Below are positions 850 to 30,499 of a DNA stretch of 64,000 nt, piece after piece. Source of the DNA: Podarcis bocagei (lineage: Eukaryota). A program made the translations under genes and the position numbers. Location of the stretch: the NCBI GenBank assembly GCA_964188305.1, contig OZ076886.1, one strand, 5' to 3'. The notes beneath the pieces were generated by a model. The model was not told where the DNA came from. It ran no database searches and worked only from the letters and a program-made list of their open reading frames with translations. Positions within the stretch are counted from its first letter, which is position 1. Each line of letters starts with the position of its first letter.

Positions 850-19803
<18,954 letters not shown>

Positions 19804-21335
19804 AGCCCGTGTCCTGATCAGCTATGAAACGTGTGGTGCTTCTTTTCATCATATTATATTAAAATTATTTCAATTGTTCCAATCACTTTGGAATCATCCA
19901 CAGATAATATCAGTTTTTGTGTAGCTCGTGGCTTTTAGAAATCAAACAATCAAATCTTATTGTCCCCTACCCCCTGGATTGGAACTAATTGGCTGAGCCA
20001 TCTGATTACTGGCTTCTCTGATATAACACTTGATCAATTGGTGATTGCTAATTTTAAACCTGATGTTTTATGTCCGTTAAGGCTTGATCAAACACTCAAA
20101 CCCTGTTGGGAGATAATATGGGGCAGTTGTCTATTAATGAGTATTTTTATTTTCTCTTGAGTGATTGGATTGTTTTACATAGAGGAGCATAATTAATAGT
20201 CTTTCTACAGTTAGTTTCACAGCTAGTGAATAGTATCGGCAATGTAGATCGCCTGCTAATTCATAGAACCATAGAATTCTATGACTGTTTAATAGTAGCT
20301 TCTGGGAAATAGTGTTCTTGCCCCTGTCTTTGTGGAAGATGTATTTCTGTGATTTCAAAAAAAGGTCTGCAAAATTTATTATGGGATTAATTGATCATTT
20401 AAAGTTTAATTTGTACTTCTAATTACTTTGACAGCTAATTTTTAAAAGCTAATTTAAAAATATTGTTAGTTTTTAAAAACAACAACTGCAGGTGGTGTTA
20501 AGACTCTTTTAAACACCCATTAAAAAGAGGCCTTTCTCTTTTCGTTCACATGAGAAGGAATGCCTCTTCTAAGAAGTTGCCTGCTATAACTAAACTAAAC
20601 ATTTTATAAGAAAACAAGAAATATGCTTCTTGCTTCAGGACTCTTTTATTCTATTCAGATGCAATTTCTGGAAATGGCATGAATTTTAGTGAATAGATTC
20701 AATCAGTCAACTAAGGTGTTTTTAATAGGGTGGCAGCCCTAATTTATAATTTATATGAAGAGGACATAGTAATGTCTTAATTTGTTTTCTTTATAAAGTA
20801 GAATCATAGAAATATATTTCTTCTACAGTTTGGCAAACGGAGGCAAACTGTTATTTCTTACTCCCGTGTAATGTTACTAGACATTACTAATACCAGGGTA
20901 AACATGCATTTGAAACACTTCTGGATAGAACCACTGTCAATATGGAGTAAAGAAATGGCACTTGTGGAAAGGAATAATACACAACTACTCCTTTCCCTGT
21001 TGCTTCTCCATTCTAGGCTGTAGATGGTGCAAAGTTGGGCTGCTGAGGGGTGTGGCCTGGGGAGAGAGGGGATGTTGCTGAGGAGGAAGAGGAGAGTCCT
21101 GAGACCCAGACAGAGAAGCCCCCAGGCCTGAAGTTCCCAACCCCTGACATAAATTTACCTCCTCGGAGATTCGAAAGCAGCTTGCGGGGGGGGGGGGGTT
21201 CTGAGAAGAAACATTCTAGTGCACACAATGGCATTTGTGCCTCAAGATGATGCTGTAAAATTCCAAAAGGAAAAAGGTGGAGCTTCCCCATATGTCGAGA
21301 TGGGCCAGTAAACTGCAGTACTTAAAAAATAAATA

Positions 21336-21577
21336 CAGTGGTACCTCGGGTTAAGTACATAATTCGTTCCAGAGGTTCGTTCTTAACCTGAAACTGTTCT
21401 TAACCTGAAGCACCACTTCAGCTAATGGGGCCTCCCGCTGCTGCCGCACCGCCGGAGCACGATTTCTGTTCTCATCCTGAGGTAAAGTTCTTAACCTGAG
21501 GTACTATTTCTGGGTTAGCAGAGTCTGTAACCTGAAGCGTATGTAACCTGAAGTGTATGTAACCCGAGGTACCGCTG
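21336..21577. mobile_element. Tigger/pogo-like MITE
   Basis: TA-CAGTGGTACCTCGGGTTA...TAACCCGAGGTACCGCTG-TA; internal TAACCTGA repeats. Confidence 0.87.
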
Positions 21578-22577
21578 TAAATCGTTTCATACTTCCTGAC
21601 AGCCAAATAATTCCCAGGGTGATTCACAAAACCAAACCAAAGCAGTGTAGCTGTTGCTAATACTCTAAATTCTAAGCATCTTGTAAACAAGTTTGGTAGA
21701 TTAGAAAAAGTTTGTCACTTGAATCCTGCATTGCCACATATAAACAAAACTATTATAGGGGCCAGAGATGTTGCCAGGAACAGCCTCTCCCCCAACAGAG
21801 GCACTTGCTTTGTTCAACCGATTTTCACTAGACTAACTTCATGTTGGGGGTTGGGGCTGGAGAATCAGCTTCGGTCGTGCTTATGGTTACATTGCTTAGA
21901 TCAGGAGTGGCCAACCCATCAGCTAAGAGGTTTGATGGCTTCTTATTTGAAACGTTTTTGGCAATTTCTCTCCTCTCCCCGCGTCAGCAGAACAAAGAAA
22001 ACCAATGGCATCAGCATCACAGTGAATAAATAAAATGAATTTGTGTGAATTTTGAGTGGCGGAAGTGGGACTTTGAGGGAAAACAATCAGCTAAAAGTAT
22101 ATAAAAGAAAATACAAATAGAATGAATTGGGGAAGGAAAGAAATGGGTTGGCTATAAAAGGGATTAATTTCCTTCTTTGGCCTTAGCCCACTTTACCATT
22201 CTTCTCACAGTGTTGGGCATGGGTCAGTGCAGCCCTTGACCAGAAAACGTTAGCCCCCCTCCCCAGCTTAAATCCAGGAGTTTTAGTTTTGTAAGATCAA
22301 TATCACAATTATGGTGATATCTCGTGGCAAAGTAAGGGAAAGGAGGACATATCCTTGTGAATCTCTAGGAGGTCTTGCATTTGAGAACTGAAAGAAAAGA
22401 TCCTAGATACTGGATTTTTTGTTCTTCAGGACTGGTTAAGATTTCTGTCTCTATGTATATCTTGGATTCCATTAAGATGTTTAACTGATGTTAATCTCAA
22501 AGGCCAGATGCAAGACTGTAACACCCTACAGTGCTTTGATTAGGGATCTCATGTCTTTCCTGGATAACAGTCAAGGT

Positions 22578-22713
22578 CAGGCATAGGCAAACTCAGCTCT
22601 CCAGATGTTTTGGGACTACAATTCCCATCATCCCTGACCACTGGTCCTGTTAGCTAGGGATGATGGGAGTTGTAGTCCCAAAACAGCTGGAGGGCCGAGT
22701 TTACCTATGCCTG
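22578..22713. mobile_element. Palindromic hAT MITE
   Basis: CAGGCATAGGCAAACTC...GAGTTTACCTATGCCTG, nearly fully self-complementary; 8-bp TSD gtcaaggt/gccaaggt. Confidence 0.85.
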
Positions 22714-24035
22714 GCCAAGGTAATAAAGGGAGGAGAGGATCTGGTAGATGAGGCTATGTGGTATGAAACCCTAGCAGCTTAAATCAAGAGCCCTTTTGAT
22801 AAGAATGCATGTTCTCATCTCACGTTTTGTGTTTGAAGAGTACAAATACTACTAATGTCTTCATTCTAAGAGATTGAGTTCATTCTTGTTAACTGAAACC
22901 TATTTAATTTCACTTAAGGGTAGAATAACAGCTCGTTTTTTTTGAAGTCTCTGAGAAGGAGAATAACAACTGTTATACTGCCAGCGGCTAGCAGGCCTTG
23001 CTGAAAACTGATACCTGTACAGGTGTCTTATGAAAGTCTTCTTCCTACTTCTTTGATCTCTGTTCTGCACCAGGAAGTCAGTTTGTAGAAGTCGATGTGT
23101 AGATGAATGGAAATTTTCTTAAAAGTTGCCATGAACCATGCAAACCTACACTGGAGCAGGTATAATCATTAGGGTGCCTTGGGTATGTGCCTTACACATT
23201 TGTGTTTTGTACTTCCATTGAAGAGTAGGATGACTCATTTCATCCTGCAAAGAGATGAGTTCACTGCTCCCAAATCTGTTACCTGGAAATCTTGCTTTTG
23301 GGGAGATGTACCACTTCTGATGGTGGAGAAAAGTTGGTTCAGGCTTTTAGAATAAAATGACGGTGTGCTTGATGGTAGGTAAAGATCATTGGGGCACTCA
23401 TTAGAGCTCCTTGGGTACACATCTGTCTGGCTCATTGACAGGACAAAATGTTCATATTGTGCGGGAGAGTTGAGTATCGGATGCAGTCGGACAGGACAAA
23501 CTTTGAAAACTCCAATAGGAGTTTGAAAATGTGTAAGGAATATTGGAAACTGCTGCATATTAGATCAGGCTCTTGGTCCATGTAAGCCCAGTATTACAGT
23601 AGCTCTCTAAGGTCACAGGCAGAGGTGCTTTGCATTGCCCACTAGCTGAGATCTCAGGGATTGAACTTGGGATCTTCTGCATACAATGCATGGGATCTAC
23701 CTTGTCCAATAGCCCTGATCTGAACACAACTAGAAAACTATTTGTGCATTTCATTGCACTCTGTAGTGGTAAAACAAAGCCTATGTATAAATGGCTTTTT
23801 TTGGCCTGAGCAGAAACTATGTAGGGTGGTTTAACTTGACCTCAAGGATCAGGTAGCAACTTGTATCCAATGGCTGCTGCTAGAACGACTGTGGTCTAGG
23901 ATAGACTGAGCTTCTAGGATAGAGATTTGCAATTGGCAGCCTTTGAGTCCCTGAGGGGTAATTTTTGGTTGTTCAGACATTCTACTTGTGTGTAAAAACA
24001 ACTTGCAAGTGGGGAGAAGTGCACTAAACTTCACC

Positions 24036-24172
24036 CACTGTTTTCCTCAACACTTGAGTCACCAAGATGTTGCTGGGCTACAACTCCCATCATCCCTGAC
24101 CACTGGTCCTGCTAGCTAAGGATGATGGGAGTTGTAGTCCAACATCTGGAAACCTAAGGTTGAGAAAGACTG
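24036..24172. mobile_element. hAT MITE related to 22578-22713
   Basis: Shared core ctacaactcccatcatccctgaccactggtcctg...gatgatgggagttgtag. Confidence 0.75.
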
Positions 24173-25120
24173 ATCTAACATGTACAACCTCTTGTGTCTG
24201 TGGAGGCTTCCTTAAGCAATTTCAAACCTATATCTTCCTGGGTCCATAATCACACTGGAAGCCTCCATGACTGTAGGAGGTTGTCTGCTTCAGATGTTTA
24301 ACATCCCAACTTATGGAGGGTGATGGAGCCGGAGCTTAGCAATTTGCCTCTGCTTGCTTGTTGTTTTCACATGCCACTGGAATGCCTGAAGACTAGTATG
24401 TTGAGTGTTAAATGTGTCGTGACATATCTTATCTGTGATGAGAGGTGGTAGTATCACATAGCTTGTTGCCTAATACAGTTATTGGTTTAAAGGGAAGGAA
24501 AAGTATTGTGTATAGGCACTGTAGCTGGGTTCAAACTTGTGACTCTTAAGGATCTCTCCCTCCTGGACTTGTGCATTGACTGCGATAATGAAAACATTTC
24601 ATTTGGGTTGTTCAATCAGCTAGCAGCATGTGCTTATGTTGGTAGTTCCCAGTGAACACTGGAAAAAACCAGACTTCTACCTAGGGCTACATAAGGGGCC
24701 CAGAGGCCTAAGACCAAGCATTCAAAGTGCAACTGAACCTATATTGGGATCTCTTTGAGTTTCTGATAAGCTGGTGTTCAGAACAATGGAACTGAAGACT
24801 GATGCATATTGAGAAATGTATTCTGGAATGATGGAAATTGTTACAACACATGAATATATAGAGGAATCAGCTAAGACAAAATATTGTGATTTAATCCAAC
24901 CCAACTCTATGCATATTTTCTGGGAAGCGAGGCTTCACTGATGTTGGTGGGTCTTATGCTAAAGTAAATGTGCATAGGATTACAGCCTTAATTTCACTAT
25001 ATTTCCATGAACTAGCAAAGGAAAGCCCATAGGTAGTGAGAAGTGTTCAGGAATTGGCCAAAGGGCAAGCATTGTGTTTGAGTTAAGTATATAAAGCTTG
25101 CTGTCTTGTTCTCTTTTCAG

Positions 25121-25180
25121 AATGTATGCGTTAGCCGCTCTCGAGAAGAAGCTTTGAGGACTGTACCTAATCATTTGTAG
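25121..25180 (+). CDS. PFKFB4: Putative alternative (duplicated) PFKFB4 terminal exon 14b (NVCVSRSREEALRTVPNHL*)
   Basis: Strong acceptor ctgtcttgttctcttttcag|aat; same phase and length as exon 14a; 12/19 aa identical. Confidence 0.8.
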   Translation, partial: NVCVSRSREEALRTVPNHL

Positions 25181-27773
25181 CACCTTTGACCTCCCCTTGC
25201 CAGCACCGTCCCAAACTGCTGAAGCAGTGCTAAGGAAACCACTCAGGGAGCTGAGAATGAAGGCAGCCTTCAAGGAAGCCAAGCAACACAGAAATGCATC
25301 CACTCCTCCTCTTCTTGAAGACGGTGTTTCAGCTGCCTGGGTCTGGCACAAGGCAAAGTTGGCATTAAAGGTTGAAATGGACCAAGTATTTGTGGAACAG
25401 AGAATGAAACTGCTTTTAAATTAATATATGTTGTCTTTATCCTGTTGTTCTTCGACTGTGGGTGTTAAAAGTATGAAATGCTGGTGTCTCTCTTAATGCT
25501 GTATCTTAGCTTTCTTCTGCAATACTTTCCTAAGCCTTTCTTGCTGTGATTTCCTGTTTTATTCCTATATTATATATAAAATCTTTACCGGACATAGAAC
25601 GGGTGTTTCTTCAACTGAGGATTCTTCCAACTATTTATTTTAGTATACTACAAAAGGGACCACCAGTCTCCTTGTATTATATTAATCCAGTTAATATATC
25701 AATTTTAGCAACAAGCAGTGTTGTCCACTTCAAGTCATTGCTTTGCAGTTAAACATTTGATTTTCTTTCTTTTTTTTTGGTAGCTGCACTAATTTCTAGG
25801 TAATTTTACTAAAGGCTCCACTTGATGCTTCACAGCATTTAATGGAAAGCCAGAATAGGTAATATTTTCCCAGATGCATTCCATCTATCTTGTTGAAATG
25901 TTCCAGAACTCCTGGGTTATTATTATTATTTGAATAGTGTGTGAATAGTTTCCTTTCCACATCATGCGTACGGCAAACCTATTTTGTCTGTTTATTGAAA
26001 ACCGCATATTTTACTTAACTGTTTTTACCTGGTCCCCCCCTTTTTTACACCCCCTCAAACTCCAAACCCCAAGCAGAGAAGCCTATGAAAAGGGAGGGTT
26101 TTTAATTGACACTCATGTAAATATTGCTCCAAATGGAGCAGATAGTAATACAATAAAACAATGTGCATGGTGGTTACCAGAGGTGAATGGCAATAACAGT
26201 GCAGGGAAAGTGTAAGACAAATTACTAGAGAGACCAAATTATTATGAAGTGCTCCTGAGTTATTGGCATTAATGCACGCTTGTTCTTACCCATCTTCTTG
26301 AACCAAAGTCACAGATGAAGTATTAGCTGTTTTGGGTTTTTATTTTTCTTACGTATTGGTGATATTTAAGTTAAAATGCATTGGGTGGGAAAGATGAAAG
26401 CGATCCTTTATTGCATATCTTCTACTTTATTGATGAGAACAGGATTTGCACATTCATAAATGGAAACAATCTTCCGTCCCCCCCAAAAAACGAGGACTCA
26501 GGATTCTTTCTTTCCGTGAACCTTAAGCAGCCACATCTTTGCCTCAGTGCATTCCTTGAGTGGAGCTCAAGAGCATAGTGAAGAACGGGGCCCTCTAGGA
26601 TTTTCAAGTATTTATATGCAAAGAGGGATACTATGCTGTAAGTGAACTTGTGAAATTGGATCAGTCCTGCTTTAGGGTCACAACCCAACAGGGATAAGCT
26701 CCAGATATATCCTGTTGCAATGAATGGGAGGCGTGTGAAAGAAATTCCTGTTAGTGATAAAACTTCATGCATGTTAGGCCAGTTGTGTTTGTTGTACTAA
26801 GCCAACGTGTAGTGTAAATAATCTTTCCATGTGATACAAATCAGCAAGCAGCAGATTAGGTGCCTGTTTGTTCTTGAACCGAAGAAAGCTTTGTCCCGTG
26901 TGATTTGAATGCTTTTTTGCCTTGCTGTCTGTGCTGGTACCTCATCGAACCTTGCCATGCTGTTAATGTTAAGAGTTCTCTGCAATGGACTATGTAAGCT
27001 TTGCCTAGTGGGGACTCGTTTATGTGGCTGGGTGCTATAATGTAACATACTGCCGTGTTCTTCATTTCTTTAATAAGGTAGCTTAGCAATATATTCAGCG
27101 TTCTGGAGATAAGCCATAAAGCCAACCTTATTTCAGAAACATAAAAAGGACTATGTTAAACTATCAAACACTTCAAAAGCGCTTTAGCTGTACTCCATCC
27201 TTTAAGATAATATGCCTTGACATCATAATGTATTTATTCAGGTAGATCACTACTTACTGGAGTAGATGAAAAGGGAGCGTTCTGCTGTTGGCCCACAGTA
27301 CAGTGTCAGCTGGAGAAGGGGATTTTGGGTAATGGCTTAAATCACAGATGAATCGTGTCAACAGCCTAGCCCTAACTTCTCTAGATGTGAGCCACAAGTA
27401 ATTATTCTTATTATTGGCTACTTAGTGGGCTTGAGTGAAAAGTTGAGGATTCACGAGCAGAAAATTGTGCAGGTATAACTTTGGATTTTAAGTGGTAAAT
27501 GTGGTTCTTATAAGAAAATACTCTCCTTTGAGTTAGCTAAGCCTGCAAGCTAGCCTTCATTGGCAGGTGTAGCATTTTCTTCTAACCTTTTCTTAACCAG
27601 AAGTATTTGCTTTCTCTCCCCCGCCCCACCTTCATATTTCTCAATGTGCTGTAAAACTGTGGCTAAATATTTTATGTATAGTAGATATTTTTATAGGCTA
27701 CATCTAAATATACTGTGATAACAGTAGTTTCTATTTACAAGATTGTATAACTGAAAAAATTGTTGTGTGTAAG

Positions 27774-27779
27774 AATAAA
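27774..27779 (+). terminator. Putative polyadenylation signal ending a ~2.6-kb 3'UTR after exon 14b
   Basis: AATAAA preceded by an AU-rich, TGTA-rich stretch typical of 3'UTR ends and followed by TG/T-rich sequence. Confidence 0.5.
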
Positions 27780-30499
27780 TTATAAATGTATGTTGATACT
27801 TGAAAATGAAAATACTAGGAAGCTCTGGATTCTAATTTAACTTAAGATGTGATCCCAATTCCACAATTTGGAAATGAGCCCCTTTGAAATGAGTTTGCTT
27901 GCTTCAAAGTAAATGAGTTTAAAAATGATAGGTTAGATGGTTGGTGTGCCACCAGCTTCATCTGGGTTTCTAGTGATCAACTAATCCAGAAGACCTTTTG
28001 TATTTGTTGATCCACAGGACTGCTTCATTCTCTACTTTTGAAAGTGTGAATGAAGAGCGTTTCTAAAAATATGGATCTGACAGGTACATTTATCAGAGAG
28101 TTGCCATTACTAGCCATTTCCTTTTAAGTGTACACTTGAATGAAAGCCGGTGGCTTTGCTTATGTGAAATGCCTCTCAGTAGGTACTAGAAATGGAAAAG
28201 GTTATGAAAATTATTTCCTTTTGTCATAACATGTATCGTAGACCCAAATGATTTTGAATGAGATAATTAGGGTGTGACTGTTAACTCACCTAGTTCTAAG
28301 GATATATTTGGCCTTCAATTTAATCTTACATGAGATTTATTCCAAGCTAATAAACATTGTTTTAAATTGTGAGGGATGCTAATTGACTTTTCTCTCGCCT
28401 GGATTTTTTTTTTTTTGACACTTCAGGTATGTGCAAACATGTCCAGCTCAAGTGCAATGATGTTCAAACTGAAATCTGTCAAATTGGGTCAAGCATATAT
28501 TTCAAATGCTATTGATGAATACTGAGTCATTTCCAGGTTTTTATATTCTATAACAACAGGCCAGGAACTGTGAGGTTTGCTGGAGTTAGTGCTAGATGAA
28601 CTGTCACTAGATGAACTGTCAATGTTTGGTTTTAAGCAGCACTGCTGTATTTACATATGTTTTTTTAAAGTGTTGCTGGCACTTTGAGACTAGCAGAAAC
28701 AGGGGACTGCTTCTTTTAAACACCTACTACTCCTTCAACCATAATTTATTTACCCCCTGCCATTACTCTTAAAACGACTCTTCTTTTAGGCTGCCATTGC
28801 CAGTGTTTAAATAGCACTGTCGTTGTTCCAGGTTGTTTCCTGAAAATGCTGGATTAATTTAGATAAAAGAGAATCAGAACCTTATCTTTCTACAATTTTC
28901 AGCTATCTTTCTACATTTTTTTACATCAAAGAGTGCAATTTATTTAATGTAGTGATGCAAGTGTAGCACTGTATCCTGACATGTCCATTTTATAGGGCAT
29001 AGAACCCACATGGCTCGTAGCCGCTGGGAGAAAAGGAAAGCATTAGGACAATCACTAACTCTGTTGTCTTCATGACTGCTGTATGATAATTCTATGAACA
29101 CGCATCCCTCTCTTTTCTTAATTCATTGTACCAGTCTTTGGCCAGAATACATTGTCTTAATGTATGCCTTTTAAAAAATGCCTGTGACTAGGGTAGAGCC
29201 CGCTAATAATTAGAGCCGACAGCAGCAGTACAGTCCCCTCTATGTAGCAAATCTTCTATAACTCTCATCACTTTTCCAGCTGCTATCACCCTTTCCTCGG
29301 CCATCCCTTCTTTTCCATCTTTTCCGTCTTCCTCTGTGCTTTTAAACTGAATTGTTGAGAGATTTCACTCCCTAGAGAATAACTACTTAACAGATTTTAA
29401 CCAGCTGGTTCCACAAAGTCATGGTTCATAAGATGCTGAGATGATAGATTCCTTTCATTTTTGTTTAGGATGGAGATAATTGCGGTTAGGGAGTAATCTG
29501 TTAATTGTGCCTCACAAGTTGGAGGCTTTAAATGCTTAAAGCAGACTGAACTCCACCATGCTCAGTATTTAGACCTCTCCTATTTTATCTTAGTCTGAGT
29601 CTTTGTTGTTGACAAAATCTAAAAACATGGAAAATGGTGTGATGGATCCTTTTTTCACCCTATTCCAAAATTATTTTTGAAGGGTTGTTTTGTTCTTAAC
29701 AAAACAACAGATAGAAAATGACCCTTCCTGCTAGTCAGTACTTTTCCTCCTAGGACCAATGGGATGATTCTGGGATCAATTCTGCCCGGCTCTCTATCTT
29801 GTGTAGTCCGCATTAACCGCAGACTTGTGGCTAGGAAGGATCTGTCTAGAAGTGTTCTAGTTTCCCTGAAAGTTACCAGGCATCTAACACTACAAATTCT
29901 TGAATGTTTGTTTGTGTGCCTGATGTTGATGATGTGTAATGGGTGAGGACACTGAGTTGGCAAGTACAAGCCATGCGTTGGTAACATGGCACAAATTCAT
30001 TTTAAGAATTCTAAGTAATATAATTTAATGTAATTAAGGTATGTCAGTAGCTGAATTAACACTATGTGCCCAAGACCCAGCAAAGGGTGGCCCTCATGTT
30101 CCCACTTCCCATTCTCCTGTGTGGCTAGATTTCAGTTTCAAATAATGTTGATGTGTCAAACAAACCAATTCCAAACCATGGGTTATGAAGTTGTCTTGTT
30201 TAACTAGGTAGTTTTGTAGACATCATCAGCTGCTGTCTTGTAATTCATAGTATTGTTGTATTTCTTTTCTCAGCTGATCAAGGAATTTTTACTTTCCTTT
30301 ACCATCCTATGATGTTTGGAAATACGCTGACAAAGTAGTGCAGGAATAGGGAAAGTTAGGCCTGGGTGGGAGGCAAAACTATCCCTGGACTTTCTAGTCC
30401 AAACCTCCTCCTGGCCCTTCTTTCACATCCTGTGTTTTTGTCTGATTAGACCGTGTTATTGTAGCCTAATGCCTCTTGCTTGCCTGCATGAAGAATAGA

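Follow-up and report, generated by a model that had tools for sequence, protein, structure and literature searches.

The 60-nt unit at positions 25121–25180 (plus strand) of the Podarcis bocagei sequence analysed here is best explained as the coding start of a true distal terminal exon of PFKFB4, which originated from a tandem duplication of the last coding exon and which supplies an alternative protein tail when the proximal copy is skipped. We assign a probability of about 85% to this interpretation. The analysed sequence, referred to as the window, is the whole stretch of 64,000 nt. The proximal copy (unit A, 19744–19803, plus strand) codes for 19 residues followed by a stop codon; the distal copy (unit B) codes for NVCVSRSREEALRTVPNHL, also followed by a stop codon, and was assigned from its translation, from RNA data, and from its conservation across species.

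The 3' two thirds of PFKFB4 are found on the plus strand of the window. Collinear tblastn matches delineate exons at 865–963, 1349–1420, 2705–2779, 4069–4128, 5422–5544, 6783–6989, 7686–7835, 9063–9167, 11175–11303, 12619–12684, and 14358–14420, and from 19744 onward. When exons were analysed singly, without a joined spliced model, six of them matched the domains PF01591 and PF00300 (6PF2K and His_Phos_1). The proteins nearest to the window gene all bear the name PFKFB4, a Podarcis PFKFB4 locus shares 95.7% DNA identity with the window, and the closest solved structures are those of rat testis PFKFB4 (1BIF, 2BIF, and 3BIF). A general search of representative proteins gave reference proteins only, and most of these matches were fragments or mis-modelled. 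Judged by these similarities, the window gene is the orthologue of PFKFB4 and not of PFKFB1, PFKFB2, or PFKFB3. A word search with a salmon protein, which returned PFKFB1, showed that PFKFB1 tails (...RDPEEAL.TVP.H[YFI]) resemble the A type.

The penultimate coding exon of PFKFB4 (14358–14420, plus strand) ends in phase 0 with ...ccacag and is followed by the donor gtaggt, which starts at 14421. The donor at 14420 is common to both choices of terminal exon. As to the neighbourhood of the gene in relatives, a convergent protein kinase C gene is located downstream of PFKFB4 in a lizard (locus L001, 85344–87194, minus strand) and in a hummingbird (locus L004, 63350–68071, minus strand), and in the cheetah locus a COL7A1-like gene and a gene of the CRF family (UCN2-like) are located upstream.

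A direct comparison of units A and B revealed 12 identical residues out of 19 and 34 identical nucleotides out of 60. The units have the same phase and their stop is at the matching codon position. At seven of the 12 common residues (positions 5, 6, 9, 11, 12, 15, and 18) different codons are used. All these values had been reported by the sequence-only reading and proved to be exact upon recount. Both units are preceded by a pyrimidine tract and cag. When the window was scanned in six frames with unit A, the query itself was retrieved with 20/20 matches including the stop, followed by unit B with 13/20, and there was no further match of at least 8/20 in the window. The best match in 100 block shuffles of the window did not exceed 9/20. 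The similarity of the units thus reflects homology rather than chance, so that A and B are homologous exons of equal length and equal phase. A tblastn analysis detected no other PFKFB-like exon downstream. Because the last exon alone has a second copy, the pair results from an exon duplication and does not represent the remnant of a second gene.

The pair is not confined to the window. Comparison of PFKFB4 loci across vertebrates, which had been proposed from the sequence alone, uncovered it in squamate, turtle, bird, marsupial, and catfish loci. In the six other loci which carry it, A is followed by B in matching phase and length and with the stop in place, and the gap from A to B amounts to 5862 nt in Podarcis, 3036 nt in Crotalus, 6921 nt in Chelydra, 4642 nt in Calypte, 4956 nt in the marsupial Macrotis, and 1437 nt in the catfish Tachysurus. 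Including the window, there are thus seven loci in which B is located 1.4–6.9 kb downstream of A, with a phase-0 AG acceptor and 19 codons plus stop. No exon B-like sequence was found within 10 kb after exon A in the placental Acinonyx.

Unit B is 100% identical in the Podarcis assembly that is 95.7% identical overall. Between Chelydra and Calypte, exon B shows eight synonymous and no nonsynonymous differences; between the window and Calypte, there are 13 synonymous and three nonsynonymous differences. Among amniotes, pS ranges from 0.55 to 0.99 and pN from 0 to 0.14, so that pN/pS is far below 1. The conservation of exon B is confined to the region from the AG to the stop codon, and this is the signature of a translated sequence. 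The pattern of substitutions shows that unit B is under coding constraint. The occurrence of the pair from catfish to marsupial, together with a pN much lower than pS, bears out the earlier proposal of an ancient tandem duplication of the last exon which has been kept under selection at the protein level.

These data also bear on the notion that unit B is a pseudo-exon in decay, has an open frame by chance, or belongs to another gene. Only its short length speaks for this, and we consider the probability to be close to nil. The shuffled sequences never came near the match with unit B, conservation of the unit extends from catfish to marsupial, no other PFKFB-like exon is located behind it, and the next gene in relatives is the convergent protein kinase C gene. 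The notion is refuted by the use of the acceptor in RNA (see below), by the presence of the pair across species, and by the bias of the changes towards synonymous ones.

The duplication is at least as old as the last ancestor shared by amphibians and amniotes, and it probably dates back to the ancestor of bony vertebrates. Orthology between teleost and tetrapod tails is clear for the A type (13.4 vs. 11.7 and 10.8 of 19); for the B type, it is weakly supported by identity (11.9 vs. 10.8 of 19), to which the exon order is added. The A tail is identical in all 19 residues in shark, coelacanth, turtle, lizard, and placentals including cattle. For a C-terminal tail, the A tail evolves at a very slow rate, and the B tail evolves several times faster. 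A PFKFB4-like protein from white shark, encoded by a gene that spans 230 kb, has the B-like end NVNVNRSEEEALKTVP, which is followed by an 11-residue extension instead of xHL-stop.

Much of this is already represented in gene models. The window matches the signature of the B peptide (NV.[VI].R[ST]..[ED]AL.TVP.H[LF] plus stop), and its B peptide is identical in 19/19 residues to that of Ahaetulla prasina isoform X3. Other squamate models with a B tail are Crotalus tigris X2, Sphaerodactylus X2, and Anolis sagrei X1, and Anolis sagrei X2 has the A tail. The B tail of birds and turtles is NVGVDRSREEALRTVPNHL, to which the window is identical at 17 of the 19 positions. A B-type tail is also found in Xenopus laevis X1. 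Both tails are modelled within one species in Bombina (X3 with B, X2 with A) and in Tachysurus (X4 with B, X3 with A). The called gene ranges stop exactly at the B stop in Podarcis, Crotalus, Calypte, Tachysurus, and Macrotis. Among cluster representatives, we counted 17 A and no B tails in placentals, compared to nine A and seven B tails in sauropsids.

Exon B is thus genuine but known, since the gene models of many non-placental vertebrates include it in an alternative isoform. The proposal of two alternative C-termini agrees with these modelled isoforms. The designation of exon B as hidden has to be dropped, since the annotated CDS of relatives ends on B and a snake isoform has the identical peptide. 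Such an exon is not known from the human annotation, which fits its absence from one placental locus and from the 17 placental cluster representatives. We found no paper that describes a duplicated last exon, or a pair of tails, for PFKFB4.

Transcription was analysed for positions 19650–25649, using two raw stranded RNA runs (X23 and X24) and contigs from two small runs (X1 and X2). The acceptor at 25121 is used in RNA. The depth of raw reads jumps at this position from about 1–2 in the intron to 14–22, and reads with the joint 19830->25121 (GT..AG) were encountered in X23 (15 reads, 12 starts) and in X24 (eight reads, eight starts). All gene-specific reads have the orientation predicted for plus-strand RNA. 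The sequence-only reading had staked its case on spliced reads into 25121; such reads exist, and the donor seen in them is 19830. In all four runs, three stretches within the intron between A and B (21250–21650, 22450–22850, and 24050–24250) are covered to very great depth on either strand and abound in loose ends and strand-switch joints. These stretches are interspersed repeats and not gene exons.

The joint defines a proximal exon A of 87 nt (19744–19830, plus strand), consisting of 57 nt of coding sequence, the TGA at 19801–19803, and a further 27 nt, with a used GT donor at 19831. Since this donor is located 27 nt past the A stop, unit B is part of the 3'UTR in the 19830->25121 mRNA. Exon A, with its 87 nt, is internal in this mRNA and occurs together with an untranslated B. 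Nonsense-mediated decay follows a 50–55-nt rule, and a stop codon located as close to the last junction as that of A (27 nt) should not elicit it.

The distal terminal exon of PFKFB4 extends over about 3.25 kb (25121–28368, plus strand). Its far end was derived from an X2 contig, which comprises 3251 nt from position 25118 and thus ends at 28368, 14 nt past an AATAAA at 28349–28354. Several differences from the window were seen in the RNA. At 25129, 26/26 reads from X23 and 7/17 reads from X24 have T instead of C, a change that does not alter the amino acid in the B frame (TGC to TGT). An extra G after 25182, directly past the B stop, was seen in nearly all RNA reads, and about five more changes are found in the next 200 nt of the UTR.

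The 19830->25121 reads bear on two other interpretations of the distal exon. In the model that had been favoured from the sequence alone, A and B are alternative last exons of the classical kind; each has a 3'UTR and a poly(A) site to itself, and A is normally terminal. Consistent with this, an X1 contig covers 19739–20400 unspliced at 19830, the X2 contig of exon A is also unspliced and reaches 20449, and X23 and X24 show weak read-through. An ATTAAA is present downstream of exon A at 19858, and no clear proximal 3' end was seen in contigs or reads. The GT at 19831 was found only in lacertids and turtle and is absent from snake, bird, and marsupial, where exon A must therefore be terminal. 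Against this, the 15 and eight reads with the 19830->25121 joint are commensurate with the depth on exon A (about 11–14) in X23 and X24, and the depth of the read-through past 19830 is only 1–2. In the raw reads, the distal exon forms the 3'UTR of the canonical form as well, so that the earlier claim that the two forms simply have different 3'UTRs is not supported. We thus regard separate last exons as very improbable in this lizard and assign the read-through sequence (19831–20450, plus strand) to a minor form with A as its terminal exon. From the restriction of the 19831 GT to lacertids and turtle, it follows that the intron in the 3'UTR is a lineage feature and not an ancestral design.

The other interpretation is that the distal exon serves this lizard exclusively as a 3'UTR exon of the canonical mRNA, its similarity to coding sequence being inherited and untranslated. 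The only directly read junction into 25121 indeed comes from 19830, past the canonical stop. In X23, this junction (15 reads) and unspliced reads (seven) make up the majority of the 26 reads at 25129, and thus most of the coverage at the start of exon B; the B-coding form may be minor in this sample. In X24, however, about eight of the 17 reads at 25129, i.e., about half, neither have the 19830 junction nor are they unspliced. The properties of the unit itself also argue against this: the B frame is intact with its stop in place, the peptide is identical to that of an annotated snake isoform, the unit changes almost only synonymously between species, and it has remained 100% identical in the otherwise diverged Podarcis assembly. 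Together with the contigs described below, this makes it unlikely that the exon is restricted to a role as UTR.

For the translated form, we infer the joint 14420->25121 in this lizard from the geometry of the contigs and from the accounting of the reads. The X1 contig that leads into exon B is aligned from 25118 and has an additional 21 letters which do not match the genome. The X1 contig that leads into exon A is aligned from 19739 and has an additional 19 such letters. Each of the two contigs thus reaches exactly 24 nt upstream of its acceptor. The extra "cag" and "cacag" are matched at the acceptors because the exon at 14358–14420 ends with ...ccacag. Exons A and B begin with the same six letters, AATGTA. 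For contigs built with k=31, these shared letters behind a single upstream exon lead to a break 24 letters (31-1-6) before the junction. The "cag" with which the X1 and X2 contigs enter 25121 fits the exon ending at 14420; it cannot come from the exon ending at 19830, since that exon ends with "aac". On exon B, the contigs have depths of 66 and 90, compared to 14 and 7 on exon A. The pattern of contigs and reads fits a 14420->25121 mRNA that is abundant in some samples. Taken together, the data strongly indicate that skipping of exon A makes the B protein.

According to the interpretation preferred here, namely a duplicated last coding exon with skipping of its proximal copy, the donor at 14420 would pick between two phase-0 acceptors, 19744 and 25121. 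Upon 14420->19744 splicing, translation would stop at the A stop and yield the ...VPAHQ tail; the resulting mRNA would either end shortly after exon A or be spliced again (19830->25121), with B as 3'UTR. Skipping of exon A (14420->25121) would lead to translation of exon B and to the ...VPNHL tail. The choice may be regulated via the conserved flanks of exon A, and the two tails may differ in function, possibly as the tissue-specific glycolytic switch that had been proposed from the sequence alone.

A role of the flanks is suggested by the conservation in and around exon A (19664–19900). The synonymous sites of the exon are conserved as well (pS 0.07–0.35), and lizard and marsupial differ at only four of 57 nt. 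Sauropsids and the marsupial have also kept about 40 nt of intron upstream of the exon and about 100 nt behind it. Such flank conservation was not found in Acinonyx, the placental without exon B. This pattern is typical of a regulated alternative exon and suggests the presence of elements that control splicing. A candidate regulatory element is a GCATG (19703–19707, plus strand) in the conserved intron flank, 37 nt upstream of exon A. It is present in the window, in Podarcis, in Chelydra, and in Macrotis, and is absent from Crotalus, Calypte, and Acinonyx. A crude test for RNA duplexes between the flanks of the donor, exon A, and exon B gave no pair beyond the level of shuffled sequences (z from -1.9 to +1.3).

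Tails of the A and B type differ at positions 3–5, 7, 8, 13, 17, and 19. Among the changes from A to B are PP to SR and V to R. A Cys is present in all four squamate B tails that were seen. Eight tail positions are invariant across 60 sequences of both types (N1, V2, R6, A11, L12, T14, V15, and P16). Because both tails keep these same eight positions, altered regulation or partner binding is more likely than an altered fold. Structure prediction for both isoforms gave mean pLDDT values of 40.5 and 39.4, with the 60-sequence alignments too alike and the packing of the tails unreadable. It has been reported that the N- and C-terminal ends of PFKFB modulate the two activities (PMC4178209, PMC7926708).

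The same layout of two exons and two tails is seen in the PFKFB4 isoform pairs of Anolis sagrei (X1/X2), Crotalus tigris (X1/X2), Bombina bombina (X2/X3), and Tachysurus fulvidraco (X3/X4), and in those of birds and turtles. The window differs from these modelled pairs in nothing essential and adds one more species. New compared to the models are the lacertid reads in which exon A is joined to exon B (19830->25121) and the strong conservation of exon A across species, at synonymous sites as well as in its flanks. Tandem mutually exclusive exons are homologous neighbours of equal length and phase, one of which is translated per protein. PFKFB4 exons A and B differ from such pairs in that both are terminal coding exons with their own stop and that they can share one mRNA, with B as UTR. 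Under the strict definition that mutually exclusive exons never occur together in one mRNA, the pair does not qualify because of the 19830->25121 joint.

Within the gene family, variants of PFKFB3 (variable region, exon 15) and PFKFB2 (terminal exon 15) likewise alter only the C-terminal regulatory end and leave the core constant (PMC4178209). Those variants add or remove unrelated tails with phosphorylation sites, whereas in PFKFB4, as described here, homologous tails of equal length (19 residues) are swapped. For PFKFB4 itself, a variant with skipping of exon 6 is known (PMC12639319), and variants from rat with differing C-terminal parts have been attributed to Minchenko et al. (2008), as cited in PMC7926708 and PMC4178209. 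Although the rat and human splice variants concern the same gene, the papers found on them describe no duplicated last exon.

The main weight of these results is on annotation. The lizard PFKFB4 gene probably has two protein tails and at least three forms of mRNA at its 3' end, and the distal 3.25-kb exon is to be assigned to PFKFB4 and not to intergenic space. For the specialist, the surprise is small because gene models already hold the A/B pair, even though we found no paper describing it. It is conceivable, albeit rather doubtful at present, that PFKFB4 with the B tail is an isozyme with a function of its own, differing in its kinase/bisphosphatase balance or in its partners, with its use set by regulated skipping of exon A and with this arm lost in placentals. 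If so, the biochemistry of PFKFB4, which comes from rat and human, would cover one of two ancestral forms. The frog as a model may be affected, given the B-type tail of Xenopus laevis X1. A second, selected C-terminal tail of PFKFB4, which is outside the literature on rat and human, is present in non-placental vertebrates.
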